The notes under the pieces were generated by a model. The model had not been told where the DNA came from and ran no database searches. It was given only the letters and a program-made list of their open reading frames with translations. Positions 39,201-61,281 of a DNA stretch of 64,000 nucleotides are shown here, one piece after another; position 1 is the stretch's first letter, and every line of letters starts with the position of its first letter. Source of the DNA: Zygnema circumcarinatum SAG 698-1b (Eukaryota; Plantae; Zygnematophyceae); contig CM074811.1 of the NCBI GenBank assembly GCA_037447605.1, positions 496,001-560,000 of the forward strand, given 5' to 3'. Position numbers and translations under genes: made by a program.

Positions 39201-40334
39201 ACCCACAGCCGACTGGGCCACGTGGACCATTCCCAGCCCGCCACGTGTCTAAAAGTCGGACGTGCCGGGTCCAGAGACGCAGCCCTCGCCATCAGAACGG
39301 ATCCAAAACAAATTTGCAGAAAGTGAAACTTGATCGCATCGCAGGAGGCACCCTCGCCTACATTCCGCCCATCCCATTCTCCTCCGAGCAGCAGATCGAT
39401 CCGCAGTGCCAGTAACCAAAATGAAGTTGAAAATGTTCCAACTTCTGACCAAAGGCAACTCATAACATTCCATAACACAATTTTCAGCTTATCACATTTC
39501 TCGAAGTTTGAAGGGCGATCATGGTCTGGTGCCCAACCAATGGCCGCGATCGACTGTCTACATAACGCCGCAATGCCAACGAGAAACCAAAGCCGACGAC
39601 GAACCATCCATCTATTTATCCATCCATACATCCATCCATTCACCCCCCAAGCGTGCCTTTATGCATCCCCTGTGCATGCCATTGCCATGGCGCGTCCACT
39701 CCCTCATCATGCCATGCATGTGCAGGTACGCGCACTATTGTAGAGCCATACTAAGTTTGATCGCCTCCTCCTCTGATGGTGAGAAGGAAGGAGGAGAAGC
39801 GTCAAGCGCCCCATGGGCCACTCTCGCATGCGACAAAAGTCGCATGCCTATTCGCACTCGCTGCGGCCGCGGTCGGTCGGTGTTTTGTCGTCTCACAGGC
39901 CCCTGATCCGCCGCTTCAAGGCATGCCTGCATGCAAAAGGAGACCGTTAGGAGCAGGTAGATGAAGGAAGGTGAATCTTGAAAGAAAGGGGGCAAACGAA
40001 TGGAGGAGATTTGAAGTAAAGCATGAAAAGCATCCGTTATTTGAATGCAACAAATGACCTCTCTAGGAATTTGAAGCAATAAGATAACTCTTAGTGTCTT
40101 GTGAAGAGGATTATAACGGATCTCTCGTAAAGCAAAAGCTGACTTCCCATCAGATAGCCTAATGATAACCAAACAGTTATTGAACGCAACGCATCTTCAA
40201 GTTCAACAATTGCGCAGAGTTGAATCCAAACATTCCAAAATGATCAGAAGAAAGACAACACTACGCAGCAAAAGCCATAGGAGGTGTCAAGGGACAAGGC
40301 GAACAGTACCAGCATCGGTAACTGGAGGAGGGGC

Positions 40335-43300
40335 TTAAAAAGAACGGCTCGGAGGGGGACGTCGAGGAGGGGGTCGACGGCTGGGAGGAGGCTTACGTGG
40401 AGGGGGCCTTTTTGAAGGGGGCCGAGGACGGGGAGGAGGTGGACGCGGAGGAGGGGATCGTGAAGCTGCAGAAATGCAGGGCATTGTGTGAGTTTCCGTT
40501 CATAATTAAAGGCGAACTCACTTCTTTCATAACTTACATATTCTAATCGAAACACGTCCTTATAAACGTTTTGGGAAGATGCAGAACGAAATGAAGACCA
40601 GTCAAAATGAAAATAAACTTACTTCAAGACTTCTGACATCGTATTTCATCATCTATGTGCATCTCAGGCTATATGCATCTCCACGAAAAATCAGATTCCG
40701 GTGTCATTTCTCGGGCTACGCAATTTTCTCTTTGAAAAGCAGAAAAGTCAAACTCGCAAGTTATCTAGCTACTGCAACTGTCGACAAGATATGTTGTAGC
40801 TATTGGGTCGAGAAAATTTTGAAGCTAAAACCATGATATCGGAGCAGCACTCGATATATCCTAATAAACTCTGCACCATTTTCTGAAAGGGCTTGCAGAG
40901 TTCACCAAGTTTTCTTACAGTGTGCTTCTGGAAGGTCGAGAATTGAATCTCTTCTATTTGCGGCATCAAATGGATCGCATTCAGTGTGCTCTAACAACAA
41001 CGACAGTGTAAACTTGATAGAAATGCGATAGTTTCCACAACCTATGCCACTCTTTTCTTCACCTTTCTTACGAGTATTTACAAGCAGCAATTTGCAACTG
41101 ACCACACGTGCCCAATGCCAGCGCATATCCCGCGTCGCATGTGCACGTGGCCGTGTCGTAACCGCACGTGCCGCGGCTGCCGCACGCTCCCTCGGGAGAA
41201 CCGCTCTGGCAGAAGGCCGCGCACACTTCCGGAGGTCTCTGATTTGGAGCTGCGCCACATCCTGTGATGTTGCGATAAATGCAGTTGTTGTCATAGGAAT
41301 TGGAGGGGGAGCAATAAGGTTGCCCGTATATTGTAATGTTGATTGGCCCGGAGAAGTAGTTGTCTTGGATCTCCAAGTCATTAGGGGTACCGATCGCAAG
41401 TGCAATGGAGCCAGTCAACTTGTTATTATTCAAGTACCTGATGACATTAAGGGTGGCGCGTTAGAGAGGGAGAGAGAGAGAGGGGAACAGTAAACCAAAA
41501 CCCGTTCAAGTCTTCCTTGTGTTACATCAAATGAAAACTTTCGTTTGTGCTCTCTGCAAAGTCTCTGCCTCCATCTTCACGACCCTACGCAACCTTCAGC
41601 CTTCAAACACTGAAACCCTAAATCTCTAAGCCTTTCCCTACATCCATTCCACCTACAATCCCATAAACCCTGCACTCACTAAATCCCCATGGCTTCTAAA
41701 CCCTTTTACTCATATGCCCCTAAACCCCTTGATTTTTAAGACTTAAAACCTAAAACCCTCAACCCTAGCCCTAATCCGTAAATCCCTAATTCGAAAATCT
41801 GGAATCTCTCGCATGCAAAACTGCGCGTTGTTGTGCATCAAAAAAGCCCGCGCCGTGACAGAAGTGACCATAAATATGAAATCAACTAAAAACTCACGCA
41901 AGCGTGAAATAAATGTGAAGTTTGAGAGGTACGAATGTTTTTTGCCGAGAACCAAAAAATTTCAAATTGCAAATACAGGGTTATCGAAGCAGCGGTGCTT
42001 ACAGGTAATGTAGTTGGGTGAGTTTAGAGATGAAGCCGGACACTCTCCCCTCCAGTTTGTTGCTGCTCAGAACCCTACAGACACACATAACGACGAAAAA
42101 ATTGTCGAAAAGGATATGGCTGGTTCTGGACTGAACACGAGTAAATCAGGTATTCAACTCTTCGTTCTATAGTCGAATTCTCAAACGCAGTCTCACAAAA
42201 AGGCAGTGCGAGATTAAAATTTACTCGCATATAACACCAAAAGTGAAAACAACCACGCGGCGAAGATTTGCCACGCAATCATGGATACACAACATCGAAA
42301 GTTGCTGCTTTGAAAGGTGCAATAAGTCACTACACTTATAAATTTAGAATAAAAGCCATGAAAATTCATATAAATCATACAAATTGGCGAGGTTCCCAAT
42401 AGAGTTTTGGATGACGCCCCTCAGAATCAGTAAAGCGTCTACATCTGATGTATCATCCATCGATCGTCACAAAAGGCTTCACCAGCTCAGCAGATGTTTT
42501 GCATCAAAAATAGAAAAAAAAAATTGAAACTCGGTTGAATGACTGCTCAAATGCAAACCGAAGCTCACGGGCGGAAGGCCTCTTGCAGGCCAACACCGGC
42601 AGGAGGAGGTGCAAGAGTACGGTACGGCGGCATCTGGATTAGAGGAGTGGCGCAAGGAAGAATCTGAAGCGTATCTGGCATTGTGACGTGATTGGTTGGA
42701 AGATTCTCGACACGTCAGTGCGATCTGATACAGGGCGAGGGGCTTTCAGCTTCTTAAATACTTACAAGGAATACAGATTCGTAAGTTTGCCGATAGAGTC
42801 CGGGATAGACCCCGTTAGGGAATTAGAAGCCAAGGTTCTGCCAAAAAGAAAAAAGAATCGGCACTGAATAAACATGCTGCCACGACTAGCATTTCTATCA
42901 CTGGCATTCCTTTGTATGGAAGTTCTATCACTTTCATTTCAGATTTAAGGGAAAAAATGCTTACAATGCGTAAAGATTCACAAGGTTGCCGATAGTATCC
43001 GGAATAGACCCCGTTAGAGAATTTTCATAAAACGATCTGCCAAAAATAAAAAAAAGGCATAGAATAAACATGCTGGCACGACTGGCATTTCTGTCACTGG
43101 AATTTCTCTGTCTGACATTTCTGTCACTTTCATTTCAGATTTATAGGCAAAAATACTTACAATGCTTGTAGATTCGCAAGGTTGCCGATAGAATCCGGGA
43201 TAGACCCCGTAAGGGAATTAGCACCCAAGTCTCTGCCGGAAAAAAAAAAAAAAAGGCACTGAATAAACATGCTACAACGAGAGCATTTCTCTGTATAGCA

Positions 43301-44360
43301 ATTCTATCACGTTTGTTTCAGATTTATGGAGAAAAATACTTACAAAAAATTAACATTCGTAAGGTTGCCGATAGAATCCGGGATAGACCCCGTTAGGGAA
43401 TTTTGATAAAACGATCTGCCAAAAATAAGAAAAAGGGCACTGAATAGACATGCTGCCACAACTAGCATTTCTATCACTGGCATTCCTCTGCCTGACGTTT
43501 CTGTCACTTTCGTTTCAGATTTTTGGGGAAAAATACTTACAATGAGTAAAGATTTGCAAGGTTGCCGATAGAATCCGGAATAGACCCCGTTAGGAAATTA
43601 GCACCCAAGTCTCTGCCAAAAATAAAAAAAATAGGCACTGAATAAGCATGCTGCCACGACTAGCATTTCTATCACTTTCATTTCGGATTTATGAGGAAAA
43701 ACACTTACAATGATTGCAGATTCGCAAGGTTGCCGATGGCAGGTGAAATGCTTCCTTTAACACCATAGAAACTTAAACCTCTGCAAAAAGCAGGTTAGCA
43801 GTGAAAGCGTCAAAAGAAAAAAGGGCCGCGGGCAGTAGAAGGACTGCTCCAGATGGCCCTTAGTAGTCCCTTTTTGAGGAGGCTTCTTCACAGGATCTTC
43901 CTCGCAGCTTCAGGCTGCAGTTCAGCAGCTATGGAATCTGCGGAGCCTCCAACATCACAAGCGGTGTTCAGTCAAAGTGTGGCTCACAGCTCAGTAACGC
44001 GCCCGGTTGCGTCGCATGTGATCCCACTCCATTTGCTGCAGTCGGTTTCACTCGCTGTCCAGGATGTGAGGTTTTGTACGTTGGTGAGTGCCGCTTTGAC
44101 AGCGAGAAGAGCGTCCCCTGCGCCCAAGCGCGAGCAGATGCAGGATTGGATTGAGGCCGCGGTCCGCTTCAAAAAGCACAAACAGAGGCCCCGCCGCGGG
44201 CAGGCCGCCTCTCCCCTTCTTCCATAGAGGGCGGGCGGGCGGGCCGCGGCGGCTCACTGTCTCGCGGGTCGATGGCCTGAGCGGCGGCTTCGCGCGGGGC
44301 GGCGGCGGCGGCAAAGAGGAGGAGCGCCGCCGCGAGAGAGAGAGACCGCGCGCGCGCCAT
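40335..44360 (-). CDS. Secreted LRR-EGF-like-Pro/Arg-rich protein, paralogue A (7 single-LRR exons)
   Basis: Exons: signal 44360-44258; LRRNT 44117-43988 (RDALLAVKAAL..LTSW..DCSKWSGITCDATGRVTEL); 72-nt LRR exons at 43780-43709, 43612-43541, 43415-43344, 43232-43161, 43036-42965, 42837-42766 and 42074-42003; LRR + Cys cap + EGF-like exon 41437-41103 (CGSRGTCGYDTATCTCDAGYALALGTC); possible exon 40990-40919; final exon 40465-40335 (SRSPPPRPPPPRPRPP..RSF*). All junctions are GT-AG and in frame. Confidence 0.85.
42766..43780 (-). repeat. Tandem exon-intron array, 6 units of about 170-200 bp, each with one 72-nt LRR exon
   Basis: Each unit contains CAG|A..TCCCTAACGGGGTCTATCCCGGATTCTATCGGCAACCTT..TT|GTAAG on the minus strand, encoding xLxxNSLTGSIPDSIGNLxNLxxL. 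Confidence 0.92.
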
Positions 44361-44520
44361 CGCGGCCAAGCGCCCGCCGGAGACACCAGGGGACGGGACG
44401 CGGGGGCGGCCAGAGGCGAGGAGAGGGCGGGGAGGGGCGGGAGGGAGGGGCCTGCGGGGAGGGAGGGCGCCTTCCTCCGCCATGGCTTGGGACAGCGACG
44501 GACGACGGCTCGCTGGCGTG

Positions 44521-44935
44521 GGGTTATTATTATACTATGGCACCGCCATACTTTGTACGGATGACGGTCTCGATGCACCGACACGATGTACTGTACCGTC
44601 AGGATGCTTCCACCGACATTGTTAAATACGGCACCGACATCACAAGCGGAGGACGCAAGCCAAAATGGACGCTGTGGACCAATCAGCGTCGGTCAATGAA
44701 ATTCGACGGTGACGCTTTGTTCTTGGGATGATTATATACTATGGGACCATCATACTTCGTACGGACGGCTGTCTCGATCGACCGACATGATGTACCATCA
44801 GGATGCTTCCACCGACATTTTTACATTATGGCACCGACATCACAGGCGGAGGCCGCGAGCCCATGAGAGCTGTAGACCAATCAGAGTCGGTCAATGAAAT
44901 TCGACGGTGACGCGTTGACTTGGGACGGTTATTAT
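44521..44935. repeat. Degenerate tandem duplication, about 205 bp x2, upstream of LRR paralogue A
   Basis: The blocks 'tatactatgg..ccatact..gtacgga', 'caggatgcttccaccgacatt', 'ggcaccgacatcaca' and 'gtcggtcaatgaaattcgacggtgacgc' each occur twice, about 205 bp apart. Confidence 0.8.
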
Positions 44936-45802
44936 AGGGTAGTGTTAAATCCACCCCTTTTTTTCGATCGACACACCCCTTTTCCGCTGGGCAGATTTAA
45001 AAAAAAACACAAACGGAAAATGCTTTTTTCACACCTTTTTAGAATCGATACAACACCTTTTTCCGTCGGGCAGATTTTATTTTACAAAAAAAAGGTCGAA
45101 ACCCTGAAGAATGCGTCTGCCCTGCCACAAGATATACAGTACCCCCCCCCCAATATTTTCCACCCTAGTACTTGCGTTTCCCAAGAAATTCGCCATGATT
45201 TTGCCGAAAACCACTTTTAGTATGGTAAGTCAATGTTATTGTATTAGGGGTGTAACCTAACCTGACCTATTTCTCAACACAAAATCTGTTAATCGAAACG
45301 GATTTGGGACGGAACATGGGTCACGCTATTCCGCTGTAATATAAGTACGGATAAAATCTTTAAATCGTACGGTATACGTACGGCGCCAATAGGAGCTCGC
45401 GACAGGGCCCGGCGGGCGGCCATGTGCTTCCGTACTATAGATCCGTATTATACAATTTAAGGTTCGATACAATGTATAATACAGTATTAATACTGTATTA
45501 TACACTGTATAATACCTTAACGCAACTGTTAACAGCCGTACAATCGGAACATAGATCCGTACGGCAATTATGTACGAAATTAGTGTACGAACACGTACGG
45601 ATCAAGTCACACGTGTTGAGTGTTTGGCAAGTGACGTGACTTGGAAAGTGCTGGAATTTCAATATTATAATCAAATTTTGTTCAGCTAACCACGAAAATA
45701 AAAAAAATACGTTAAATACATTAAAAATACACTGTATTTTTAAAATGTTGTATAATACGCATGTATTATACAGTGTATTAATACACGCGTTTGATACACA
45801 CG

Positions 45803-48800
45803 TGCCCTGTCGGCGTCTGCCGCCACTCGCCCGCCCTCCCTTTCGGACGCCTCCGCTCGACATCGTCGGGCAGTTCAGTTAGGCCGATGCGGGGAGTTGT
45901 CTCGCGCTGCTCGCGCTCTTCGACCCTTTACGCCCGCCCCGGCCAACAACGACACTTTGGATCGCCTTCGGACTCTCCATCCGGATGCGCCTGCGGATGT
46001 CCCTTCCTTCATCGACACTTTTGAGCCTGTCGACTCGTTTGTGCTTGATCGTGCCGCTTTCATTCGGGCGCTTACTCGCTCCCCTCATTTGTCTGCAGGG
46101 GGGCCTTCGGGCATGGTTTATGAGTTGCTTCGTGATGTGTTTTCTCCAGACACCGGGGATAGTGGGTTTGGTTTGCTTTTTCAGATTGCTTGTGTCATAT
46201 CGCGGGGGTGCATTGTTCCTAGATCCGTGAGTGTATTTGTACGTCAGCTCGTTTGCGTTTTACTTTTAAACCTGCAGGGGAGTTCGCCCCATAGCCGTAG
46301 GGAGGTTTTGTATCGCATGGTTGCTCGCGCTATGTGTTTTCAGTTACAGGGGGCCTTTCAGGATCATTTTTCCCCTTACCAGTTTGGTGTGGCGACCCCT
46401 GGGGGCTGCGAGGCCGTAGTTCATGGCATTCGTGCGACGTTGGATCTTCACCCTGATTGGGTTGTTTTGCAGGTTGATGTGACAAACGCTTTTAATACGG
46501 TGGATCGTCATGAGATTTTTCGCGAGTTACGAGAGGCCCCTGCACCGATTGCGTCCCTTTTTCCTTTTGTGCGCACATTTTATTCTCGTTCGAGCCCGCT
46601 CCTTTTTCCTCTTGGCGATGCATCTGGTGGAGTGGCGACCTTGGAGTCTGCGACCGGGACCCGCCAAGGCGACCCTTTAGGAGGTCCTTTGTTCGCTTTG
46701 GCGCACATTCGTGCGCTTCGAGCTTCGGCACAGGCTTTTCCAGGCTGCCTTTTTCCATCAGTGGCCGACGATACTCATATCATTGGCCCTGCTGACCAGG
46801 TCGTTGCCGCGTTTACTGATTTTACTACTCGATTGGCCGCTATGCGTTTGACGGTAAATTTGTCGAAGTGTTTTGCTTGGTCTCCGGTTGGTATCCCTTC
46901 TACCCTTTCGCTCCCTTGTGGTATCCAGACTTGTGCTGATGGAATTGGTATTCGTGTTTTAGGCTGCCCTTTCGGCGTTGCATCTTATGTTGATCGTTTT
47001 GTTGATGATGCTTTGGTTGAGGATACGTCTCAGGTCGATGAGCTTCCACATCTTTCAGATCCTCAGGTGGCTTTTTCTTTGCTTACTCGTTGTTTTGCTT
47101 TGCGTCCGTCATACCTTTTGCGAACTCTCCCTCCTAACCCTGCTTTCCTTGAGTCATTGCAATCTTTCGATGAGCGTTTGTTTTCTGTATGTCATCGCCT
47201 TTTGGGTCCTGGTATTTTCGATCGACCGGAGGGTCCGCTTGCACGTACGCAAGCCTCGCTCCCTATTTCGGCGGGCGGTTTAGGACTCATCCCGACAATT
47301 CGTGTGGCGCCTTCTGCGTTTTTGGGTAGTTGGGCTCTCGTTGCTCCTATTTTGGCTTCGCGTTTTATTGTGGCTGATCGTCCGTTGCTTCAGTCTGTTG
47401 TCGCTCATGTTGATGATGGTGATCTTCCGTTTCAGGTTGCATTGCGTGACGCCCATGGTTTGCTTCCTGCTAGTGCTCAGGCTCGTACGCCCCCGTTTGT
47501 TTCGCTTGCCGTCGAGTCTGTTCCACGTGTCCAGCTCACTTTGACTGATGAGGTTGTTGCTGCTGAGTTCTCTACCCTTATTGCGGCTCTTCCTTCTGAT
47601 GTTGCGCGTGCTCGGCTTCGCTCTTGTGCGGGTCCTGGGGCTGGGGCTTGGTTGGCTGTTACCCCGATATTTTCCACCCTTCGTTTGACCCCAGGCCAGT
47701 TTCAGCTTGCAGCGCGACTTCGTCTCGGGCTCCCCCATCCGCCATTGCAAGGTTCTCCTCTGTTGATGTATTGGGTACATCAAGGTGTTGGTACTTAGTT
47801 CCTAGCATGAATGTTGTCCGGGAGATCAATGTGCTGGTATAGGGACAATGTCATGCATGAACGGTCATGTTTGGTGTAGGACCGAACATGGGGGGTGCCC
47901 GTATCATTAGGGCACTGTACGGCAGGTCTAGGAATAGTTTAGGGTCGTAGGTTTGCGGCTTTGACTTAGATCGAACCAAAGGGGGTGCGCGGAGTGCGCT
48001 TGGACGGATTGGAGCGCGGCCGTACGGACGGCGCGTGAATTGTACGGACGACGCGGAAGTTTGCGGACGCGGAGATTTGGAAGCGCGGGAGGCGGATTTG
48101 CGTGAAGCGACATGATTGGTCGCGACAGCACGCAAAACGCGGCGCATCTCTGAGCGTGACGTGACGCAGGGTTCGGCAATGTCGGTGGAGAACTTGTGAG
48201 ATATTTGGAGTGCGCTGATTGGTCGCAGCGCGAGTGCGGAGTACGGAGCGCAAAGCGGCTGAGTGCGCCGCGAGTGCGCGGAGTACTGACGAGCGAATCT
48301 AATTGGTCGCGGCGCGAGCGCGAAACGCAGAGGGAGAAGTTGCGGCGCGGAAACGACAAGGGAATATCGGCGGCGAATCGAGACACGCCATGTGGACCAC
48401 TTGCGGAGTGGGTTCGCTGGCTCGATTGTACGGCAGAATGGTCGGCGGGCGAAGAATGCTACTGAGGGCTGGCGAAGCGGCGGAACTGTACGGATGGACA
48501 AGAACTAGGTCGGCGCCATCGTAGGTTTACGAGGCGCACTAGCTGGTCGCTAATTCTGAGTGCGCCCACTCAGCGGAATGCAAGGGCCGGCCGTGACGTG
48601 ACAATTGTGTCACGTCACATCGCCATGGTTGCTTAAGAGAGAGCAAGCTTGGCTCTCTCACTACTCACTCACTAACTCAAGCTCAACTCTCTCTGAATGT
48701 AATGCTGCTCTGTCGTTGGTTGTTTAGGAAGAGCAAGCAGAGGTTGAGGCGTAGAGGAGTCCGGCCTTGTGTATGAAGGTCGTGAGAACTAGCTCTCATC

Positions 48801-49781
48801 ATGCTAAGCTTTAGTGAAGAAGTTAGATGATGTGTCCCTCATGTGTTGAGGTGGAGGAGGAGTTCAAGGAGGCAGTTAGTGCCTGGCTACTGCAGTTGGG
48901 GTGTAGGCTATCTATGAGAATAGGATAGTGCTCATGTAAGGAGGAGAATCTAGCATAAGGGATTATGTAGATTTCCTAAAGAGCTTGTATTACACTCTTG
49001 AAGTTTAAGGAGTTTTATGGCCGTGGGCTTTCTCCTTATTACTGCATCATTTGTCATGTGAGTCCTCGTGTTGGATTGACGTGGTGGATGAGTGGAGGCA
49101 GCCATTGTATGGGCGGTGTGTTGCTCCACATGAGGAGATCATTGAAGAAGCGTGGACTTGAGGAGCCGAGACCATGGAGGAGTTGAAGTGTTCTTGTAGG
49201 TGACGCGTTTAGTTTTCCGCTGTGCGCACCTGGCAAGGGGTGGATGGAAGGCAGTTCGTGGAGGAAGCGGTATGTGGCCCAAGTGGAAGATTGAGAAAGT
49301 TTTGAGCTTCATCCGGGCATGTATTTATCCCTTCCTTGAAGTCTGCCCCCCTCGGGCCCTCCTTGCACCAACATCCTCGTTGTGTTTGTGGTGATTCGAT
49401 TGATGCGCAGGGCGTTCATCTACTTCGATGTGCACACGGGGGCGAACGCATTTTGGCTCATAATGTTGTGCGCGATGCGATTGCTGCGGTGGCTCAAGAA
49501 GCTAACTACCTTGTGCGACGGGAGCCGAGCCACNNNNNNNNNNGTGACCGTGTTGGTGGACTTCCGCCGCTCCCTCGTCGCGACGTGCCTCACATCGGTG
49601 ACCTTCGCGGCTGCTTCTAGGGCTGCGTTGTTGTGCCTAGGCGTAGTTTTCCGCTCATAGCTTCGTTTTATTGTGTTTCGGTCCTTTGTGACCAGTCCTT
49701 CGTGGTTCCACATTTTGCCTTTATCCATGTAAATTTGATGGCCTCGCCATCGCGAGTTCAATGAAAGTTTGCGTTACTCCT
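45803..49781 (+). mobile_element. 5'-truncated, defective CRE-clade-like non-LTR retrotransposon (RT + C-terminal Cys/His finger)
   Basis: RT ORF 45897-47740 has QFGVATPGGCEAVVH, LQVDVTNAFNTVDR, GTRQGDPLGGPLF, SVADD, and RVLGCPFG. It resumes at ~49359 with CVCGDSIDAQGVHLLRCAHGGERILAHNVVRD. It is flanked by the direct repeat GTTTGATACA(C/T)ACG (45789-45802, 49782-49795), a probable TSD. The KPAG/GVRPIAVG motif near 46268-46300 is frameshifted. Confidence 0.85.
47741..49358. mobile_element. About 1.6-kb non-coding insertion splitting the retrotransposon ORF (class unresolved)
   Basis: The RT-side sequence ..LRLGLPHP (to 47740) and the finger-side sequence SLHQHPRCVCG (from ~49359) join in frame if this block is removed. 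The block has no recognisable coding motif. Boundaries are approximate. Confidence 0.55.
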
Positions 49782-49916
49782 GTTTGATACATACGGATCT
49801 ATACTCCGTACAGAGAGAAACAGTGCGGCCGCAGGCCGGACTCTAACATAAGACCACCCGCCTATTGGTCTGACTCCCCCTAATAATAATAATAATAGGG
49901 GGTGTCAGACCTAATA

Positions 49917-50116
49917 GGGGGAGTCAGACCTTGGCCATCGCTTACGAAATTCCCGACTTCCTTATACTAAAAGTCACTTCTTTCGTGTACGAATTCCGGG
50001 TCAGGATCCGCCGCTCCGCCGTACACAGCTGTACCGAAATGCGTACCTAGCCAATGCTGAATTCGCCCGACAGGCTTACGAAATTGGTTTGGCGATGGTC
50101 AAGGTCCGACTCCCCC
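49917..50116. mobile_element. About 200-bp MITE-like element, copy 1
   Basis: Terminal inverted repeats GGGGAGTCAGACCTTGGCCATCGC ... GCGATGGTCAAGGTCCGACTCCCC. A second similar copy lies at 50229-50422. Confidence 0.65.
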
Positions 50117-50228
50117 TATTGGTAACACGGACTTCCTTATATTTGCAAATTCCAAGATTTTCGCCCAATATTTGCAGAAACCATGGCGAAAATATTAGGG
50201 GGGGGTACTATACTCCGTCCGTACATTA

Positions 50229-50422
50229 GGAGTCAGTCCATGACCATCGCTTACGAATTTCCCGAATTCCTTATACTAAAAGTCACTTCCTTCGTGTACG
50301 AATTTCGGGTCGGGATCCGCACCTCCACCGTACACAGCCGTACCGAAATGCATACCTGCCAATCATGATTCGCCCGATAGGCTTACGACATTGATTTGGC
50401 GATGGTCAAGGTCTGACTCTCC
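50229..50422. mobile_element. About 195-bp MITE-like element, copy 2
   Basis: Colinear with 49917-50116 (shared 'ccttatactaaaagtcacttc', 'gtaccgaaatgc', 'ggcttacga', 'tttggcgatggtcaaggtc'). Confidence 0.6.
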
Positions 50423-51509
50423 TTATTCGTACGAAAGGTAGCCTCTCTGACGCGAGCGCCATTTGCAACGCCAAAACCTAAAATTGCGATCGACAACCGT
50501 ACGTTCGTACAGGCTGTTCAATTTCAACGGTCGTATGGTTGTTCTAAAAGTGTTCTAAAACTCTGAAACGTTTGGATATTAGAACATTCGAAGACTGAAA
50601 TTTAAAGCTCCACCATTCCTTTGTACGGACTTTTTGCCATTCCTGGTCCCGAGCAGGCTGTGCCGTCCCGGTGCATGCATACATGGATGACGTCATCTTC
50701 ACGTGTTAAAGCCCCGCCTACGTAAACGAACGTGACGTGACGTGACGTGACGTGACAGAACCCCCCTCTCCCCCATTCTCCTTCGATCAGATCGACCCAC
50801 AGTGCCAGACACCAAAATGAAGTTGGAAATGTTGCACCTTCTGACCAAAGACAGCTCAAAATTATGCATCCCCTGTGCATGCCACTGCCATGGTGCGTCC
50901 ACTCCCTCATCATGCCATGCATGTGCAGGTACGCACACTACTGTAGAGCCATACTAAGTTTGACCGCCTCCTCCTCCTCTGAAGGTACCAAGAGGGAGGA
51001 GAGGCGTCACGCGCCCCATGGGCCGGTCTCGCATGCGACAAAAGTCGCATGCACTTGTTGAGGCCACGGTTGGTCGGTGTTGTGTCATTGCGCAGGCCCC
51101 GATCCGCCTGCATGCAAAGGAGACCAAGGAGCAGGCCGATGAAGGAAAGTGAATCTTGAAAGAAAGGGGGGAAACGAATGGAGGAGATTTTAAGTAGAAC
51201 ATGAAAAGCATCCGTTATTTGAATGCAACAAATGACCTCTCAGGAATTTGATGCAATAAGATAACTCTTAGTGTCTTGTGAAGAGGATTATAACGGATCT
51301 CTCGTAAAGCAAAAGCTGACTTCCCATCAGATAGCCTAATGATAACAAAAAAGGTATTGACTGCAACGCATCATCCAGTTCAACGATTGTGCAAAGTCGA
51401 ATCCAAACATTCCAAAATGATAAGAAGAAAGACAACACCGCAGCAAAAGCCATAGGAGGTGTCAAGGGACAAGGCGAACAGTACCAGCATCGGTAATTGG
51501 AGGAGGGGC

Positions 51510-54500
51510 TCAGAAAGAACGGCTCGGAGGGGGACGTCGAGGAGGGGGTCGACGGCTGGGAGGAGGCTTACGTGGAGGGGGCCTCCTTGAAGGGGGCCGA
51601 GGACGGGGAGGAGGTGGACGCGGAGGAGGGGATCGTGAAGCTGCAGAAATGCAGGGCATTGTGTGAGTTTCCGTTCATAATTAAAGGCGAACTCACTTCT
51701 TCCATAGCTTACATATTCTAATCGAAACACGTTCTTATAAACGTTCTGGGAGGATGCAAAACGAAATGACGACCCTTCAAATTTAAAGTAAACTTACATC
51801 AAGACTTCTGCCATCATATTTCATCATCTATGTGCATCTCAGGCTATATGCATCCCCACGGAGTCAGGTTCCTGTGTCATTTCTTGGGGGATGCAATTTT
51901 CTCTTTGAAAAGCAGAAAATTCAAACTAGCAGGTTATATAGCTACTGCAATTGTAGACAAGATATGTTGTAGCGTGCACGCGATTGGATTGGGTCGAGAA
52001 AATTATTGAAAGCTAAAACCATGATATCGGAGCAGCACTCGATATATCCTAATAAACTCTGCACCATTTTCTGAAAGGGCTTGCAGAGTTCACCAAGTAG
52101 TACTCGCCATGTTCTTCTAGAAGGTCGATAATTGAATCTCTTCTATTGGCGGCATCACATGCATCGCATTCAGTGTGCTCTAACAACAACGACAGTGTAA
52201 AAGTTGATAGAAATGCGACAGTTTCCACAACCTATGCCACTCTTTACTTTTCCTTTCTTGCGAGTATCTACAAGCAACAGGTTGCAACTCACCACACGTG
52301 CCCGATGCCAGCGCATATCCCGCGTCGCATGTGCACGTGGCCGTGTCGTACCCGCACGTGCCGTGGCCCCCGCACGCTCCCTCGGGAGAACCGCTCTGGC
52401 AGAAGGCCGCGCACTCTTGCGGAGGTCTCTGATATTGAGCTGCGCCACATCCTATGACGTCGCGATAAATGCAGTTGTTGGTATAGTTGAAGTAGCAATA
52501 AGGTTGCCCATATGTTGTAATGTTGATTTGCCCGGAGAAAAAGTTGGCTTCGATCGACAAGTCATTTAGGTTATAGCTCGCAAGAGTTATGGAGCCAGTC
52601 AACTTGTTGTTCTTTAAGTACCTGATGACATTAAGGGTGGCGCGTTAGAGAGAAGGAGGAACTTTCCAACAAAACCTGTTCAAGTCTTCCTTGTGTCACC
52701 GCCACTGGAAACATTCGCTTGTGCTGTCTCCAAAGTCTCGGACTCCATCTTCACGACCCTACGCAACCTTCAGCCTTCAAACACTGCACCCCTAAATCTC
52801 TAAGCCTTTCCCTACATCCATTCTACCTGCAATCCCATAAACCCTGAACCCACTAAACCCGCATAGCTTCTAAACGCTTCAACTCATAATCCCCTAAACC
52901 TCGAGTTTTAAGACCTAAAACCTTCAACCCTAAACCCTAACCCTAATCCTAATCTAGCCCTAACTCTATATCCTAAAAATCTTAACAACGAAATCCAATC
53001 TCTTGCATGCAAAAGTGCGCATTGTTGTGCGTCAAAAAAGCCCGCGCCGTGACAGGAGTGACCAAACATATGAAAGAAGTGACCAAAGCTATGAGATAAC
53101 TTAAAACTCATGCAAGCGCAAAATAAATGTAATAGTTTGAGAGGTACAAATGCTCGGCCGAGAGCAAAAATTCAAACTGCAAATACAGCGTTATCGACTC
53201 AGCGGTGCTTACAGTCGTTCCAGTCGGGTGAGTTTAGTGATGAAGCCGGATACTCTCCCCTCCAGTTTGTTGCTGCTCAGGTCCCTACAGACATACATAA
53301 CGACAAAAATCCCAACGAAAAGGACTGAACAGATATAAATCAGGTATTCAACTCCACGTTCTATAGTCGAATTCTCAAACGCAGTCTCACAAAAAGGCAG
53401 GGCGCGATTAAAATTTTACTCGCATATAAGCACCAAAAATAACTACGCGGCAAAGTTTTTCCACGCACTCACGAATACACAACATCGAAACTTGCTGCTT
53501 TGCGAGATGCAATAAGTCACTACACTCATGATTTCAGGAAAATAGCCATACAAATTCATGCAAATCATACAATTTCGCGAGGTTCCCAATAGAGTTCGGG
53601 ATAACGCCCCTCAGAATAAGTAAAGCGTCTCATGTGAATTAGCATCCAACGATCTTCATAAAAAGCTTCACGAGCTTGGCGGATATCTTGCGGCAAAAGA
53701 AAAACTAACAAAATGAAACTCAGTTGAATGATTGCTCAAATGCAAACCGAAGCTCGAAGTTGCCACGTGCCAAACAACCAAGCAGAAGTTTCATGGCATC
53801 TCCTCCTCCATGGAGGGAGGAGGGGACGGACGGCTTTGCGCAACATGACATGGAGGAGAAGATGCCGACATGGAACACGCGCAATTGGAATGACATGGGT
53901 CCTCTCAAGGGCGGGGCGCCGCCCGGCGGAAGGCCGCTCGCAGACCGGCACAGGTAGGAGGAAGTACGAGAGTACGGTAAGGCAGCGTACGGATCGGAGT
54001 GGCGCAGGGAAGAATCTGAAGCGTATCTGACACTGCGACGTGATTGGCTGGAAGATTCTCGACACGTCAGTAAGATCTGATACGGAGCGAGGGGCTTTCA
54101 GCTTTTTAAATACTTACAAGGCTTGCAGATTCGCAAGGTTGCCGATAGAATCCGGGATAGAGCCCATGAGGGAATTATTACGCAAGTCTCTGCCAAAAAA
54201 AAAAAATAGGAACTAAATAAACATACTGCCACGACTAGCATTACTTTCACTGGCATTCCTCTGTTTGACATTTCTATCACTTGAATTTCAAATTTATGGG
54301 GAAAAATACTCACAATCTTTCCAGATTCGCAAGGTTGCCAATAGAATCCGGGATAGACCCCGTTAGGGAGTTATCACGCAAGTATCTGCCAAAAATAAAA
54401 AAAAAGCACTGAATGAACATGCTGACACGACAAGCACTTCTATCACTGGCATTCCTCTGTCTGGCAGTTCCATCACCTTCATTTCAGATTTGTGGGGAAA

Positions 54501-57500
54501 AATACTTACAAACTTCCCAGATTCGAAAGGTTGCCGATAGAATCCGGGATAGACCCCGTAAGAGAAGTAGAACCCAAGGATCTGCCAAAAAATAATAAAA
54601 AAGGCACTAAATAAATATGCTGCCACGACTAGCACTTCTAGCACTGTCATTCCTTTGTCTGGCATTTCTATCACTTTCATTTGAAATGAAATGAAATGAA
54701 ATACTTACAAGTAGTTCAGATTCGCAAGGTTGCCGATAGAATCCGGAATAGACCCAGTTAGGGAATTAGAACCCAAGGATCTGCCAAAAATAATAAAAAA
54801 GGCACTAAATAAATATGCTGCCACGACTAGCACTTCTAGCACTGTCATTCCTTTGTCTGGCATTTCTATCACTTTCATTTGAAATGAAATGAAATGAAAT
54901 ACTTACAAGTAGTTCAGATTCGCAAGGTTGCCGATAGAATCCGGAATAGACCCAGTTAGGGAATTAGAACCCAAGGATCTGCCAAAAATTTAAAAAAATA
55001 GGCACTGCATAAACATGCTGCCACAACTTGCTTTTTTGTCACTGGCATTCCACTGTCGGGCATTTCTATCACTTTCATTTCAAATTTAAGGGGAAAATTA
55101 CTCACAAGTATCGCAGATTCGCAAGGTTGCCAATAGAATCCGGAATAGAACCCGTCAGGGAATTAGAATCTAACCATCTGCAAAAAAAAAACAAAAAAGG
55201 CACTGAATAAACTTGCTGCCACGACTAGCATTTCTCTCACTGGCATTCCTCTGTCTGACATTTCTTTCACTTTCATTTCAGATTTATACGGAAAAATACT
55301 TACAAGTACAACAGATTCGCAAGGTTGCCGATAGAATCCGGGATAGACCCCGTTAGGGAATTGTGATACAAGATTCTGCCAAAAATAAAATAAAAGGCCC
55401 CTGAATAAACAATCTGCCACGACTAGGATTTCTATCACTGGCATTACTCTGTATGGCATTTCTATCACTTTCATTTAAGACTCATGGGGAAAAATACTTA
55501 CAAGTACTGCAGATTCGCAAGGTTGCCGATAGAATCCGGGATAGACCCCGTGAGGGAATTGTTATACAAGTATCTGCAAAAAATAAAATAAAAGGCGCCT
55601 GAATAAACATTCTGCCACGACAAGCATTTCTATCACTGGCATTACTCTGTATGGCATTTCTATCACTTTAATTTAAGATTCATGGGGAAAACTACTTACA
55701 CGTTGATCAGATTCGCAAGGTTGCCGATAGAATCCGGGATAGACCCCGTTAGGGAATTTGAATACAAGTATCTGCAAAAAATAAAATAAAAGGCCAATGA
55801 TTAAACATTCTGCCACGACTAGCATTTCTATCACTGGCATTTCTCTGTATGGCATTTCTATCACTTTAATTTAAGATTCATGGGGAAAACTACTTACACG
55901 TTGATCAGATTCGCAAGGTTGCCGATAGAATCCGGGATAGACCCCGTTAGGGAATTTTGATACAACCATCTGCCAAATATAAAATAAAAGGCCCCTGCAT
56001 AAACATTCTGCCACGACTAGCATTTCTATCACTGGCGTTACTCTGTATGTTATTTCTATCACTTTCATTTCAGATTTATGGGGAAAAATACTTACAACAA
56101 TCGCAGATTTACAAGGTTGCCGATAGAATCCGGAATTGACCCCGTTAGGGAATTTGAATACAAGTATCTGCAAAGAATAAAATAAAAGGCCCCTGAATAA
56201 ACATTCTGCCACGACTAGGATTTCTATCACTGGCATTTCTCTGTATGGCATTTCTATCACTTTCATTTCAGATTTATGGGGAAAAATACTTACAAGTTAT
56301 GCAGATTCGCAAGGTTGCCGATAGAATCCGGGATAGACCCTGTTAGGGAATTAACACCCAAGTCTCTGCCAAAAATGGAAAAAAAAAAATAAGGCACTCA
56401 ATAATATGCTGCCACAACTAGCATTTCTATCACTGGCATTACTCTGTATGGCATATCTATCACTTTCATTTCAGATTTATGGGGAAAAATACTTACAAGT
56501 ACAACACATTCGCAAGGTTGCCGATAGAATCCGGGATAGACCCCGTTAGGGAATTGTGATACAATATTCTGCCAAAAATAAAATAAAAGGCCCCTGAATA
56601 AACAGTCTGCCACGACTAGGATTTCTATCACTGGCATTACTCTGTATGGCATTTCTATCACTTTCATTTCAGATTTATGGGGAAAAATACTTACAAGTTG
56701 ATCAGATTCGCAAGGTTGCCGATAGAATCCGGGATAGACCCCGTTAGGGAATTTTGATACAACCATCTGCCAAAAATAAAATAAAAGGCCCCTGAATAAA
56801 CATTCTGCCACGACTAGCATTTCTATCACTGGCATTACTCTGTATGCGATTTCTATCACTTTCATTTCAGATTTATGGGGAAAAATACTTACAAGAACTG
56901 CAGATTCGCAAGGTTGCCGATAGAATCCGGGATAGACCCCGTTAGGGAATTTGAATACAAGTATCTGCAAAAAATAAAGTAAAAGGCCCCTGAATAAACA
57001 TTCTGCCACGACTAGCATTTCTATCACTGGCATTACTCTGTATGCGGTTTCTATCACTTTCATTTCAGATTTATGGGGAAAAATACTTACAAGTACTGCA
57101 GATTAGCAAGGTTGCCGATAGAATCCGGGATAGACCCCGTGAGGGAATTGTTATAAAAGTATCTGCAAAAAATAAAATAAAAGGCCCCTGAATAAACATT
57201 CTGCCACGACTAGCATTTCTATCACTGGCATTACTCTGTATGGCATTTCTATCACTTTCATTTAAGATTCATGGGGAAAACTACTTACAATTCTCTCAGT
57301 TTCGCAAGGTTGCCGATAGAATCCGGGATAGACCCCGTTAGGGAATTTTGATACAACCATCTGCCAAATATAAAATAAAAGGCCCCTGAATAAACATTCT
57401 GCCACGACTAGCATTTCTATCACTGGCATTACTCTGTATGGCATTTCTTTCACTTTCATTTCAGATTTATGGGGAAAAATACTTACAATGTTTCCAGATT

Positions 57501-58388
57501 CGCAAGGTTGCCGATAGAATCTGGGATAGACCCAGAAAGTGAATTATTACCCAAGTCTCTGCCAAAAAAAAAATAAATAAATAAGGCACTCAATAATATG
57601 CTGCCACAACTAGCATTTCTATCACTGACATTACTCTGTATGGCATTTCTATCACTTTCATTTAAGATTCATGGGGAAAAATACTTACAATGATTGAAGA
57701 TTCGCAAGGTTGCCGATAGAATCCGTGATTGACCCTGTTAGGGAATTCCCCTTCAAGTCTCTGCCAAAAACGAGAAAAAAAAATAAGGTACCGACTATGG
57801 GCAGGTTAGCAGTGAGAACGTCAGAAGGAAAAAGGGCCACGGGCAGTAGAAGAACTGCTCCGGGCGGCCCTGTTAGCCGAAGAAAAGTGTCGTTTTTCTC
57901 TGAGGAGACTTCTGACTGCAGACCCTCCTGGCAGCCTCGGGCTGCAGTTCAGCAGCTTTGGAATCCGCGGAGCCCTCCAACATCACAAGCGGTGTTCAGT
58001 CAAAGTGTGGCTTACAGCTTAGTAACGCGCCCCCTTGCGTCGCATGAGATCCCACTCCAGTTGCTGCAGTCGGGGTTACTCGTTTTCCAGGAGGTGAGCC
58101 ATTGTGCGTTGTTGAATGCCGCTTTGACAGCGAGAAGAGCGTCCCCTGCGCCCAAGCGCGAGCAGATGCAGGATTGGATTGAGGCCGCGGTACGCTTCAA
58201 AAAGCACAAACAGAGGCCCCGCCGCGGGCAGGCCGCCTCTCCCCTTCTTCCATAGAGGGCGGGCGGGCGGGCCGCGGCGGCTCACTGTCTCGCGGGTCGA
58301 TGGCCTTAGCGGCGGCCTCGCGTGGGGAGGCGGCGGCGGCAAAGAGGAGGAGCGCCGCCGCGAGAGAGAGAGACCGCGCGCGCGCCAT
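51510..58388 (-). CDS. Secreted LRR-EGF-like-Pro/Arg-rich protein, paralogue B (20 single-LRR exons)
   Basis: Exons: signal 58388-58286; LRRNT 58145-58016; nineteen 72-nt LRR exons starting at 57760, 57558, 57360, 57162, 56964, 56766, 56568, 56365, 56167, 55969, 55771, 55573, 55375, 55177, 54978, 54780, 54581, 54385 and 54189; LRR exon 53284-53213; LRR/Cys/EGF exon 52621-52293; possible GC-donor exon 52179-52108; Pro/Arg exon 51640-51510. Every LRR exon is stop-free in the LRR frame. Confidence 0.88.
54118..57760 (-). repeat. Tandem exon-intron array, 19 units of about 198 bp (72-nt LRR exon + about 126-nt intron)
   Basis: Exon starts are spaced 196-204 bp apart. Each unit has a CAG acceptor and a GTAAG/GTGAG donor, and the intron sequences are nearly identical. 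Confidence 0.95.
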
Positions 58389-58964
58389 CGCGGCCAAGCG
58401 CCCGCCGGAGACACCAGGGGACGGGACGGCGGGGCGGCCAGAGGCGAGGAGAGGGCGCGGAGGGGCGGGAGGGAGGGGCCTGCGGGGAGGGAGGGCGCCT
58501 TCCTCCGCCATGGCTTGGGACAGGGACTGACGGCGCGCCCTCATTCGCTGCCCGAATTTATTCGACGGACCATATTAGTAGAATAATCGTCGTGGGACCA
58601 GCGAGGAAATAATTATTTTCGCATGGCCCATTTTTAAGCATATTCGGTCGCAGGAGAATTCGAGACACGTAGCAGAGTATTGATACAGGACAAGACCTTT
58701 TTGTCGTTTTGTTCACATCGTCGAGTTGGCATTGCCCGACTGGATGTACGGCGGGCGGCCCAATTTGTCCTGTCGAACTGAAGGCTCAAATTTTTGTACA
58801 GTTTAGTTGTCGTTAGCGCCAGGCCCTCAGGGGAGTATCAAGCCGTAGGAAAAAGGGACTTCGATGTTGCCCAGTTCCATAATCGCCTAGTTACCGTTAA
58901 ACTGAACGGTTCCCAGATCGGCTCACAGGGGTCATATGGCCGTTGCGCGACCAAAGGCCATGAC

Positions 58965-59395
58965 ATTGGAACCAACCAATGAATTGCCAACCATTCGATT
59001 GTTGTGGAATGAACCATGAGACCATGAGATTGGAACGAACCAACCATCCAACCCTTGAATTGCCAACCATTCATTTGATGTGGCATGAGCCGTAAGACCA
59101 TGGCATTGGAACCAACCAACCAACCAGCCAACCAATGAATTACCAACCATTCGATTGTTGTGGTATGAACCATGAGACCATGAGATTGGAACGAACCAAC
59201 CATCCAACCCTTGAATTGCCAACCATTCATTTGATGTGGCATGAGTCGTAAGACCATGGCATTGGAACCAACCAACCAACCAGCCAACCAATGAATTACC
59301 AACCATTCAATTGATGTGGTATGAACCATGAGACCTTGAGATTGGAACCAACCAACCAACCAGTCAACCAATGAATTGCCAACCATTCATTTCAT
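58965..59395. repeat. Minisatellite, about 78-bp unit (alternating 76/80 bp), about 5.5 copies, rich in CCAA
   Basis: The anchor TGAATT(G/A)CCAACCATTC occurs at 58980, 59056, 59136, 59212, 59292 and 59372. Confidence 0.9.
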
Positions 59396-60498
59396 GGTTG
59401 TCTGGGTCGCAACAAAGTAATCATCGCAACCATTGGCAACGGTCGGCCATTGAGTCCAATTCTTGGCACCCACTAGCAATGGGTTGTTGGTTCAGCTGTT
59501 GGCTCAGTTGAGAATTTGGTGACTATTGAAGAAAGCCAACGGAAATGTTGACCGGCGAGCCAGTTAACGCACAGATGTTAGTTCCATGCGATGTTTTTGT
59601 CCCATCCTTCAACGCAGCGCCCATTCAGTTACACATGTAGCGCACAGTTTTCCGGTAACCGACTAGGACCAGGACCATTTTGATCAAATCAGCATCACCA
59701 ACAGTCATTCGCCACGTGTACCAACTTGACACGTGCCACATCCTCATTGAGGGATGCTCGGCCGTTGCTTAAAGAGCCCCCTCCCTGCCTGCTTCCCTCT
59801 CTTTCTTCAGCAATTCCCGCCACCCCTTTGGGAATTGCATAGCTGCAAACTTCAGTTTTCAGTTTGCAGTTTACAATTTGACGTGGTATGTCTTGCTGGT
59901 TTCTTGGAAAACTCATGCTCTCACTCTCCCTCGCAAAGTGGGAAGACCTGTCGGTGACATATACAACGACATGGGGCCATAAAGCAACATGTTTTGAATT
60001 CATGAAAGGAGAGAGGGAGGGAGAGAGAGATGAGGAGCGAGAGAGAGAGAACGGGGGGGAATGGGTGGGCGGGAGAGAGAGGGAGACAGAGAGAGAGAGA
60101 GAGACAGAACTCTTCACCACAATTTGGAACAAGACGAAGATCGAAGTCTTCTTCATTTCCATGCAACTTCAATCCAGCCAATGATAAGCCTCCAATCGAA
60201 CAGCACATGAAGGTCCCCTCCCTATGTCTCATGCATCACAGGCTCGCGGTAGGTCACTGGTGGTCTCATGGCTGCGATGTCAAGTCAGTTATGGACATGC
60301 TTCATGCTCTATACAATAATCCCTTGCTTTAGTACACGCATGTACATGGATGGCCCTTCGCCCTGCATCCTACCCAACGTGAGACGACGAAGCTGCAAAG
60401 CCTAACTCTTCCAATGCAAAACTTCCCAACCAGTCCTTTTTTCATTCTCAGCCAAAAGTAACTCTAAAAGACCCTTTTTTTTCTCTCCTTATTCACTA

Positions 60499-61222
60499 TC
60501 AAGCCGTGGCTTCCTTCTCGTCCTTTTCCGCTTCATAGTGAGTCCTCACTTCTTCCAGCTCGCAGAGCACCCCGTGGTTGGATTTAGGGTTCAAAAAGAT
60601 GACTGGGTGCTGATGCGCCCCCAGCTTTGGATGGGGTGAGAGCGTCTGCAGGCCTTTCTCCTTCACATGAACCATAGCTGCTTCGATATCATCCACCTAT
60701 CTCAAACAAAGGAAGATAAAAAAGAAAGGTAAGAGAGCATTTAGGGCATTTAGGATTCTCTCAAGGCTCGCCCTTCCTACCCGCTTCTTACCATTTTCTA
60801 TGGTAAGCGAAAGTTTTGTACGGAATAGGGGGCCATATCAGTAAACAAAGGTTGAAAAGATACGTACTGTGAGGCAGAGGTGGTGTAGGCCTCCCCGTGG
60901 GTTTTTCTCCAAGAATCCGGCAATGGGGCTGTTATCTCCAAGAGGGTGGAGGAGTTCTATGCAGAAGTTCGCCACCCGCACAAACGCAACGGTGACTCCA
61001 TGTGCCGGTTGTGGCTGTTGACGCCGCCGAACATACAAATCAAGTCAAGTTGATTCTCTTCGCGTCAAATAAAGTTCGAGTTATTCAATACTTCCAAAAG
61101 CTCAAACTTGGGGCACGAAAAAAAATATCGAAGATACAAAAATGTATCTACCACGTTGAATGCACAGAAGGCAAGCATGGGCTGGTGATAAATGCCTCCC
61201 CGGCTGCTCTGAACGCCAACCC

Positions 61223-61271
<49 letters not shown>

Positions 61272-61281
61272 NNNNNNNNNN

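Follow-up and report, generated by a model that had tools for sequence, protein, structure and literature searches.

Two paralogous genes for leucine-rich repeat (LRR) proteins, here called A and B, were identified on the minus strand of a window of 64,000 nucleotides (nt) from the streptophyte alga Zygnema circumcarinatum SAG 698-1b (contig CM074811.1, positions 496,001 to 560,000; all coordinates below count from the first nucleotide of this window). The two genes carry six and nineteen repeat exons, respectively. Our preferred explanation, to which we assign a probability of about 70%, is that both paralogues are intact and that B was enlarged by gain of repeat units after the gene duplication, with gene conversion acting at the gene ends and rapid change at the ligand-facing codons. 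The gene structures and their colinearity, the genealogy of the units and their mosaic composition, the contrast in rates, and the conversion tracts are observed in the sequence itself.

Gene A (coding span 40335-44360, minus strand, stop codon TAA) consists of 11 exons with 400 codons, and gene B (51510-58388, minus strand, stop codon TGA) of 24 exons with 710 codons. Exons were placed via conserved anchors and were joined in a script solely to obtain length and stop counts; the searches were carried out exon by exon. Both models are intact, with GT-AG borders at every intron, consistent phases, and zero internal stops. The position of the stop is common to both genes although the stop codons differ. 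Exon order is also the same in A and B. A signal peptide exon of 103 nt (E1; 44360-44258 in A and 58388-58286 in B) and an exon of 130 nt for the N-terminal LRRNT cap (E2; 44117-43988 and 58145-58016) are followed by the 72-nt LRR exons, exon P1 (42074-42003 and 53284-53213), a cysteine-rich exon of 335 nt in A (41437-41103) and 329 nt in B (52621-52293), and a last exon of 131 nt (40465-40335 and 51640-51510). P1 is a further 72-nt LRR exon of non-array type. The cysteine-rich exon comprises the last LRR, a C-terminal cap, and a cysteine module resembling epidermal growth factor (EGF). Each gene therefore has two non-array LRRs, encoded by P1 and the start of the cysteine-rich exon, in addition to one dead LRR exon described below. 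The last exon encodes 42 Pro/Arg/Lys-rich residues, and neither a hydrophobic stretch nor further coding homology was found after this Pro-rich tail in the conserved 3' flank of both copies.

By visual inspection, the peptide of the first exon begins with basic residues, followed by an Ala/Leu core of 16 residues and a final part rich in Ala. In both copies an in-frame ATG is located 41 codons upstream of the signal-peptide ATG (44483 and 58511, minus strand). Its context is good, with G at both -3 and +4, and the extension encoded from there is Pro/Arg-rich. Homology between A and B starts just 22 nt upstream of this ATG.

The array of gene A (42766-43780, minus strand) contains six 72-nt LRR exons at 43780-43709, 43612-43541, 43415-43344, 43232-43161, 43036-42965, and 42837-42766. 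The array of gene B (54118-57760, minus strand) contains nineteen such exons (L1-L19, hereafter BL1 to BL19; AL in gene A), spaced at 196-203 bp and separated by introns of 124-131 nt. A minus-strand scan for AG, 72 nt, and GT yielded six exons for A and nineteen for B, each of them open in one common frame, which bears out the count of 6 versus 19 given in a first-pass annotation of this DNA. Tandem Repeats Finder reported a period of 196 with 4.7 copies in A and a period of 198 with 18.5 copies and 87% match in B. All 25 array exons are 72 nt long and every intron is of phase 2. Since the exons are thus symmetric, any number of units can be added or removed with the reading frame being kept. 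The codon split at the array junctions encodes Leu, except for two units with Val.

Five of the six exons in A are array-type and one is distinct. The array-type exons of both genes (24 out of 24) read x-L-x-x-N-S-L-T-G-S-I-P-D-S-I-G-N-L-A-N-L-x-x with the Leu codon split. These repeats fit the 24-residue plant-specific LRR consensus LxxLxLxxNxL(T/S)GxIPxxLGxLxx attributed to Kobe and Kajava. The first LRR of A deviates from the array consensus at 18 of 44 core positions and that of B at 3 of 44, in agreement with the first-pass description of a first repeat that is distinct in A and array-type in B; the peptide strings quoted there were likewise correct. A 38-nt exon core occurred 23 times at up to 3 mismatches (0 expected), on the minus strand and confined to the two arrays. 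It had no match on the plus strand, and an exact scan of the JGI metagenomes for it resulted in 0 matches. Alignments of the introns in search of opposite-strand LRR exons yielded best scores at background level.

Two further observations concern the integrity of the arrays. A dead LRR exon is located in the intron following the array in both genes (42362-42433 in A and 53552-53623 in B, minus strand), with scores of 43 and 51, respectively, in local alignments to the unit consensus. It contains indels and has lost the donor GTAAGT. As the relics in A and B are orthologous, this exon died before the gene duplication. Furthermore, BL15 and BL16 share a perfect 204-nt match at an offset of 198 and form a perfect two-copy duplication (54588-54989, minus strand). 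This duplication either took place very recently or was introduced during assembly, and in the latter case the count in B would be 18 instead of 19. An open reading frame (ORF) of 221 codons at 56398-57063 (minus strand) spans three array units of B in a non-coding frame. Such an ORF is possible because the unit of 198 nt equals 66 codons, and it probably results from the repetition as such; read in the coding frame, each array intron opens with a stop (TTG TAA).

The duplicated segments, delimited by blastn and sliding divergence, comprise 39373-44505 for copy A, i.e. gene A with short flanks, and 50772-58532 for copy B (both minus strand). Comparison of the two stretches by blastn resulted in a single colinear path on the same strand that covers exons, introns and the 3' flank. 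Positions 39659-42566 of A correspond to 50862-53755 of B (85.7% over 2977 bp) and 43790-44504 to 57801-58532 (90.6%), with the repeat array situated between both matching blocks. An additional 90-bp block of homology (39373-39462 and 50772-50858) lies past an A-specific insertion of about 200 bp (39463-39658) and reaches the outer coordinates that the first-pass annotation had proposed. The flanking sequences outside the two segments are unrelated. The comparison supports the claim of the first-pass annotation that there are two copies in direct orientation, colinear even in their introns. Collapsed haplotypes, which it had named as a possible source of error, do not account for the two copies, since unrelated flanks and introns that are 9-18% apart identify them as true paralogues; a haplotig or false duplication was rejected on the same grounds. 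A single long "multi-headed" gene extending over both copies was also rejected because start, signal exon and conserved stop are present separately in A and in B; a reverse-transcriptase ORF on the other strand in between likewise argues against it.

An assembly gap of 10 N (49534-49543) is located in the 6.3-kb spacer outside both genes, 1.2 kb past the 3' homology limit of B and about 5 kb upstream of gene A. Both genes are free of N and both arrays lie within single contigs (A on contig 11543-49533, B on 49544-61271). Hence, the reading frames are independent of the gap. The terms "tandem", "direct orientation" and "about 6 kb apart", in contrast, depend on the scaffold join, since the gap separates A from B. 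The tandem arrangement proposed earlier thus holds in so far as the copies lie side by side on the same strand of the assembly, while their adjacency hangs on the join.

Introns of A and B differ by 12.5% overall, with 18% in intron 2, 15.5% in the post-array intron, 14% in the next intron, and 9% in the last intron together with the 3' flank. Divergence is only about 2% in the first 390 bp of homology, which comprise the 5' leader, the signal exon, and intron 1 (44118-44505 in A and 58146-58532 in B, minus strand). About 9 differences were counted in the 388 bp of this tract (Fisher 1e-12), and in intron 1 just one of the 140 nt differs (Fisher 2e-7 versus the remaining introns). A second tract of low divergence, about 3%, surrounds the Pro-rich exon. 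We read both tracts as the probable result of gene conversion between the paralogues, which would have homogenised the gene ends. The unconverted introns have Kimura two-parameter (K2P) distances of 0.16-0.22 (0.156-0.217) and silent sites differ by 0.10, indicating that the gene duplication is not very recent. Its earlier description as recent could not be upheld, because the nearly identical signal exon and intron 1 belong to a conversion tract.

The non-array exons differ by 0.101 at replacement sites (pN) and 0.102 at silent sites (pS), i.e. dN/dS is 1.0. This average masks unequal rates. The LRR scaffold is strongly conserved, as are the cysteines (all 10 in the cysteine-rich exon) and the Pro-rich exon with 1 replacement in 42 codons, and many replacements are found in the LRRNT exon and the last LRRs.

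The genealogy of the units was derived with IQ-TREE from the conserved exon core and the intron of all units, with the hypervariable codons excluded. Ten B units (BL2-6 and BL8-12) formed a clade restricted to B (support 99/98), and BL1+BL7 (95/92) and BL15+BL16 (100/100) were further B-only pairs. The young B-specific block BL2-BL12 (55502-57558, minus strand) thus has 10 of its 11 units in one clade, the exception being BL7, which pairs with BL1. The five A units formed no clade and were unresolved among the older B units; in this star-like tree, individual A units could not be assigned single orthologues among the old units of B. Mean intron K2P was 0.062 in the young clade and 0.073 for BL1/BL7. 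All other unit comparisons (A-A, A-B, and old B-old B) gave about 0.19. As this equals the value of the unconverted introns of the genes, the old wave of unit copying is not separable in age from the gene duplication. Judged from the unit sequences, the tree shows a later wave confined to B that would have added about nine units, followed by two single duplications. B-specific events account for 11 of the 13 extra units. The B-only clade and the two B-only pairs indicate that the difference in exon number arose mostly after the gene duplication, in line with the first-pass annotation, and did so by tandem amplification inside B. The ancestral unit number was perhaps six to nine.

Signs of repeat loss were more limited. 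Homology in intron 2 ends 9 nt before the acceptor of A, and in B an array-type intron 3'-end and an array-type exon are found instead. The distinct first LRR of A resembles the first LRR of two distant relatives, P0001 and P0004, which indicates that A keeps the ancestral state and that the first LRR of B is derived. Of the "expansion and contraction" suggested previously, the expansion applies to B, while contraction is seen only in the lost first LRR of B and the exon that died before the duplication.

Units of the young block are mosaics. Identical 5' cassettes (WLYQN in BL3/6/10 and YLYSN in BL5/9/11) are joined to differing 3' cassettes and introns, and BL10 and BL11 have a common 3' cassette and intron with different 5' cassettes. 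Of the 91 site pairs that are informative in the young clade, 39 failed the four-gamete test, and incompatibility rises with distance (permutation p 0.0008). This pattern fits repeated out-of-register recombination or conversion as the putative mechanism, with the 44-nt exon core, which hardly varies, and the introns, which resemble one another, as the presumed substrate.

The five x codons of the motif xxLxLxx, corresponding to exon nt 65-70, 2-4, and 8-13, were taken as the predicted ligand-facing positions. Nucleotide diversity among the array exons is 0.34-0.39 at both exon ends and 0.07 in the core, compared to 0.15 in the introns. At the ligand-facing codons pN is 0.53-0.61, whereas the other eighteen codons have a pN of 0.02-0.04 and a pS of 0.14-0.19. 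AL6 and BL19 are the single clear pair of positional orthologues. They differ at 9 of 15 ligand-facing nt versus 6 of 57 nt in the rest of the exon and 103 of 666 nt in the adjacent intron (Fisher 1.4e-4). Hence, both within the arrays and between the paralogues the ligand face diverges about four times faster than neutral DNA. The young block of B is rich in Tyr and Trp at the ligand-facing positions and A is not. The intron splits the variable motif, with two codons at the end of one exon and three at the start of the next, and each predicted beta-strand is therefore built from two exons.

Outside the arrays, 7 of 13 predicted ligand-facing codons in the non-array LRRs are changed versus 8 of 40 others (p 0.03). 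The notion that the non-repeat parts differ mostly at surface residues is in line with this enrichment, but not with the LRRNT exon taken alone (p about 0.36). Positive selection on this exon, with 15.5 replacement versus 1.5 silent differences, was not significant and was dismissed; its divergence of 13% is that of the intron background, and it stands out against intron 1 because the latter was converted.

The Pfam model LRRNT_2 (PF08263) matched A with 36.9 and B with 36.4 bits (cut-off 20.7). By this cap and the 24-residue repeats, both proteins belong to the plant-specific extracellular LRR type. For the cysteine module the EGF label is plausible, judging from matches below threshold (E 0.003-0.04) to EGF_2 (14.6-17.8 bits, cut-off 22.1) and EGF_Teneurin (16.6-17.9 bits, cut-off 24.3) and from the motif C-x-C-x2-G-Y-x6-C, which is conserved in relatives. 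An AlphaFold model with a pLDDT of 83.6 had no match in the PDB with Foldseek, and a wide search with VIA-align returned LRR C-terminal ends alone at Z < 3 and no EGF match. In a PDB sequence search the first 50 residues of the cysteine-rich exon, i.e. the last LRR and the cap, aligned to the end of the PEPR1 ectodomain (E 8e-5); this search found no LRX sequence match to the exon. The C-terminal part gave a weak structural alignment to 6qxp (Z 2.4, root-mean-square deviation 5.2, 84 residues), which we take to be an LRX2-RALF4 complex, although the entry title names no protein.

A word-index protein search with the cysteine-rich exon, which for this query covers proteins of 61-194 amino acids, found nothing. 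A whole-library HMMER search of 1.84 billion representatives resulted in eight weak matches, the best with E 1.9e-6 and 41% identity, and no near-identical protein, hence no public transcript or annotation of either gene in that library. Several matches share the order of LRRs, cap, a QR-x4-C-x-AFC ... C-x-C-x2-GY module, and a proline-rich stretch. One of these, P0003 (Mesotaenium endlicherianum ME000014S01168), has 40% identity over 105 residues (E 2.5e-5). In P0003 a transmembrane segment and a protein kinase (Pkinase, 4.7e-37) follow, whereas A and B end after the Pro-rich tail. P0004, P0006, and P0009 are short, kinase-less relatives. P0009 is encoded on intronless 1.5-kb contigs in assemblies of two sequencing runs; these contigs probably are transcripts, so that such proteins would be expressed somewhere. 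P0001, which combines plant-type LRRs with this cap/EGF-like module, is listed in EukProt under the name of the alga-eating amoeba Leptophrys vorax. It is likely a prey (green-alga) sequence in the amoeba transcriptome.

A and B lack the transmembrane segment (and kinase) that follows the ectodomain in receptor-like proteins and receptor kinases. They probably are secreted LRR proteins without membrane anchor, as suggested by the putative signal peptide, and expression and a wall-associated role in ligand binding may be assumed. As probably secreted plant-type LRR proteins without kinase they resemble LRX and PGIP proteins. In LRX, a Cys-rich region comes after the LRRs, and then a part that is rich in proline and binds to the wall. 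In contrast to the long extensin domain with repeated Ser-Pro(3-5) of LRX, A and B have a basic tail of 42 residues with a single SPPP and otherwise R/K-PPP, and an EGF-like cysteine module with few relatives. No homology to LRX or PGIP beyond generic LRR was shown.

In the proteins that we propose, a signal peptide and the LRRNT cap precede the array, in which every 72-nt exon supplies one LRR of 24 residues; two LRRs of non-array type, the C-terminal cap/EGF-like module, and a short basic proline-rich tail come after it. Misaligned recombination or slippage among the similar 198-bp units of exon and intron would result in gain or loss of whole repeats in frame, with unequal crossing-over as the presumed mechanism. 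After the gene duplication B would have gained about eleven units, in a burst of about nine and then by two single duplications, and would have lost the ancestral first LRR, while A presumably stayed short. Gene conversion may have kept the 5'-end and the Pro-rich end alike, and meanwhile the ligand-facing codons would have changed about four times faster than the introns. The predicted outcome are solenoids of about 8 (A) and about 21 (B) repeats with different concave faces.

Contraction of A is an unlikely alternative that nevertheless deserves consideration. The ancestor would have had about 19 or more units, of which A lost most, and concerted evolution by conversion would have homogenised the block in B. 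Conversion was active at this locus, as seen in the 5' and 3' tracts, and the units are mosaic. Moreover, the dead exon shows that exons can be lost, and the old A and B units are separated by a K2P of 0.19 like the genes, which leaves room for a different ancestral number. However, conversion of ten introns to 2-10% sparing BL7 and BL13-BL18 is less simple than a local burst. Repeated cassette orders in the block are typical of multi-unit duplication, and except for small intron indels no deletion scar was seen in the array of A. The possibility that the array lengths or the side-by-side placement result from repeat mis-assembly or the scaffold join appears highly improbable to us. With the exception of one pair the units can be told apart, frame and splice sites are retained in the full set of 25 exons, each array lies inside a single contig with N-free genes, and the divergent introns (9-18%), unrelated flanks and different indels are not those of collapsed or split haplotypes. 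In its favor are the 10-N gap between the copies, the perfect duplicate BL15/BL16, and the 90-98% similarity of the young units, which are poorly resolved by short reads.

We give hardly any credence to the idea that one copy is an unexpressed, decaying duplicate with differences due to neutral drift. It is compatible with the dN/dS of 1.0 over the non-array exons, with promoters that are unrelated between the copies upstream of about -145, and with the lack of a transcript-derived relative in public collections. Yet the 11 and 24 exons contain no stop, frameshift or lost splice site despite 10-18% neutral divergence, the stop codon has been swapped (TAA/TGA) at the same position, and conservation covers ten cysteines as well as the LRR scaffold and Pro-rich exon, with changes clustering at ligand-facing positions (p 0.03). 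Several points do weigh against our preferred explanation of unit gain in B combined with conversion and fast ligand-face change. Low divergence in the young block of B could partly reflect homogenisation by conversion and not recent copying. A dN/dS of 1.0 in the non-array exons is also expected from relaxed constraint on one copy. The unit counts, BL15/BL16 foremost, and the join across the gap come from the assembly alone. Expression and the splice model are predictions, and the closest library protein has just 41% identity. A start at the upstream ATG (44483 and 58511) could bury the hydrophobic segment inside the protein, and the EGF call was made from Pfam matches below threshold and the cysteine pattern, with no fold match above Z 3. 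Going further, one could imagine the arrays as a fast germline "accordion" that provides each strain with its own extracellular LRR binders, with exon skipping, for which the symmetry of every exon would allow, adding combinatorial variety. We consider this extension speculative and its chances slim. If true, each gain, loss or skip would create a new chimeric binding strand across a splice junction.

Variation in repeat number has precedents in plants. The tomato resistance genes Cf-2/Cf-5 and Cf-4/Cf-9 (Dixon et al. 1998 and related work) are reported to form clusters of extracellular LRR paralogues or alleles that differ chiefly in LRR copy number. This number reportedly varies by unequal recombination among near-identical repeats, and the xxLxLxx motif is said to be hypervariable. 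The Cf genes resemble A and B as extracellular plant-type LRR paralogues that differ in LRR copy number and have a hypervariable xxLxLxx; in contrast to A and B, their LRR domain is intronless and membrane-anchored and their immune function is proven.

Both loci show the features of one-LRR-per-exon arrays, namely constant length, one phase, paralogues differing in exon number, and relic exons. In the "type I" LRR exon arrays of the ROCO genes of brown algae, every LRR occupies a single exon of 72 nt with introns of phase 2, recently duplicated loci contain different LRR exons, introns harbour exons that have been inactivated, positive selection acts at concave-face positions, and combinatorial exon skipping at splicing has been proposed (PMC3341825, PMC11378527). 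A and B are similar to these genes of Ectocarpus and Saccharina in exon length and phase, differing exon sets, relic exons, and concave-face selection. The brown-algal proteins are intracellular LRR-ROC-COR GTPases, whereas A and B encode plant-type LRR proteins that carry an LRRNT cap and are extracellular, and the variable motif lies inside the exon there and is split over each splice junction here. Introns in Ectocarpus carry opposite-strand LRR exons, a hallmark of "dynamic shuffling". Such inverted intronic exons were looked for on the plus strand of the A and B arrays and introns, and none were found. Tetrahymena LRR genes contain arrays of 90-bp exons, almost all of phase 2, that grow or shrink by unequal crossing-over, sometimes with retroelements (PMC6564038). 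Both systems have arrays of phase-2 LRR exons of one length, with repeat numbers that vary between genes, but in Tetrahymena the exons are of 90 bp, belong to another LRR class, and are distributed over thousands of genes in a ciliate germline genome. No publication on arrays of this kind was found for streptophyte algae, nor any on this protein family. This is a known mode of receptor-gene evolution, of which the locus is a clear, dated example in a little-known algal protein family. It is set apart by the extracellular plant-type protein, the lineage, the lack of opposite-strand intronic exons, and the splice junction in the variable motif.

The spacer between the genes contains a reverse-transcriptase ORF of 633 codons (45897-47798, plus strand; Pfam RVT_1, E 5e-15, 56 bits), a retroelement fragment. 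About 1.5 kb downstream of it a short Cys/His-rich ORF (49336-49533, plus strand) is cut by the left edge of the gap, and nothing recognisable continues from it to the right of the gap. The two ORFs may belong to one decayed non-LTR retroelement with its 3'-end lost in the gap. The nest of transposable elements noted in the first-pass annotation comes down to this one reverse-transcriptase ORF and some local repeats. The latter comprise direct duplications of about 205 bp at 44519-44936, directly adjoining the 5' homology limit of copy A, and at 49920-50431 (83% and 88% identity, respectively), and, about 440 bp beyond the upstream homology limit of B, an 80/156-bp tandem repeat at 58972-59396 with a match of up to 94% and 5.4 or 2.7 copies. 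Elsewhere in the window we observed ORFs with a cytidine-deaminase and a RibD C-terminal domain (469-2613, plus strand), representing a RibD gene of riboflavin synthesis with a best public relative 53% identical, and a 412-codon ORF with an LSM domain (18812-20050, plus strand; E 9e-17). Further 10-N gaps are located at 61272-61281 and 61765-61774, with long (GA)n runs beside the second.

If our preferred explanation holds, an alga of the land-plant line already diversifies extracellular LRR binders in the way plant resistance-gene clusters do. Clustered paralogues, gain of whole repeats, conversion at conserved ends, and fast change of the ligand face would be shared with these clusters, the difference being that here each repeat is placed on its own symmetric exon. 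One locus provides a dated series of events at K2P values of 0.19, 0.06, and 0.00. The family, with its LRRs, cap/EGF-like cysteine module and basic proline tail, has few public relatives, one of which is a Mesotaenium receptor kinase. With about 8 and about 21 predicted repeats on the same scaffold, A and B would represent two natural proteins suited to a comparison of binding and localisation.

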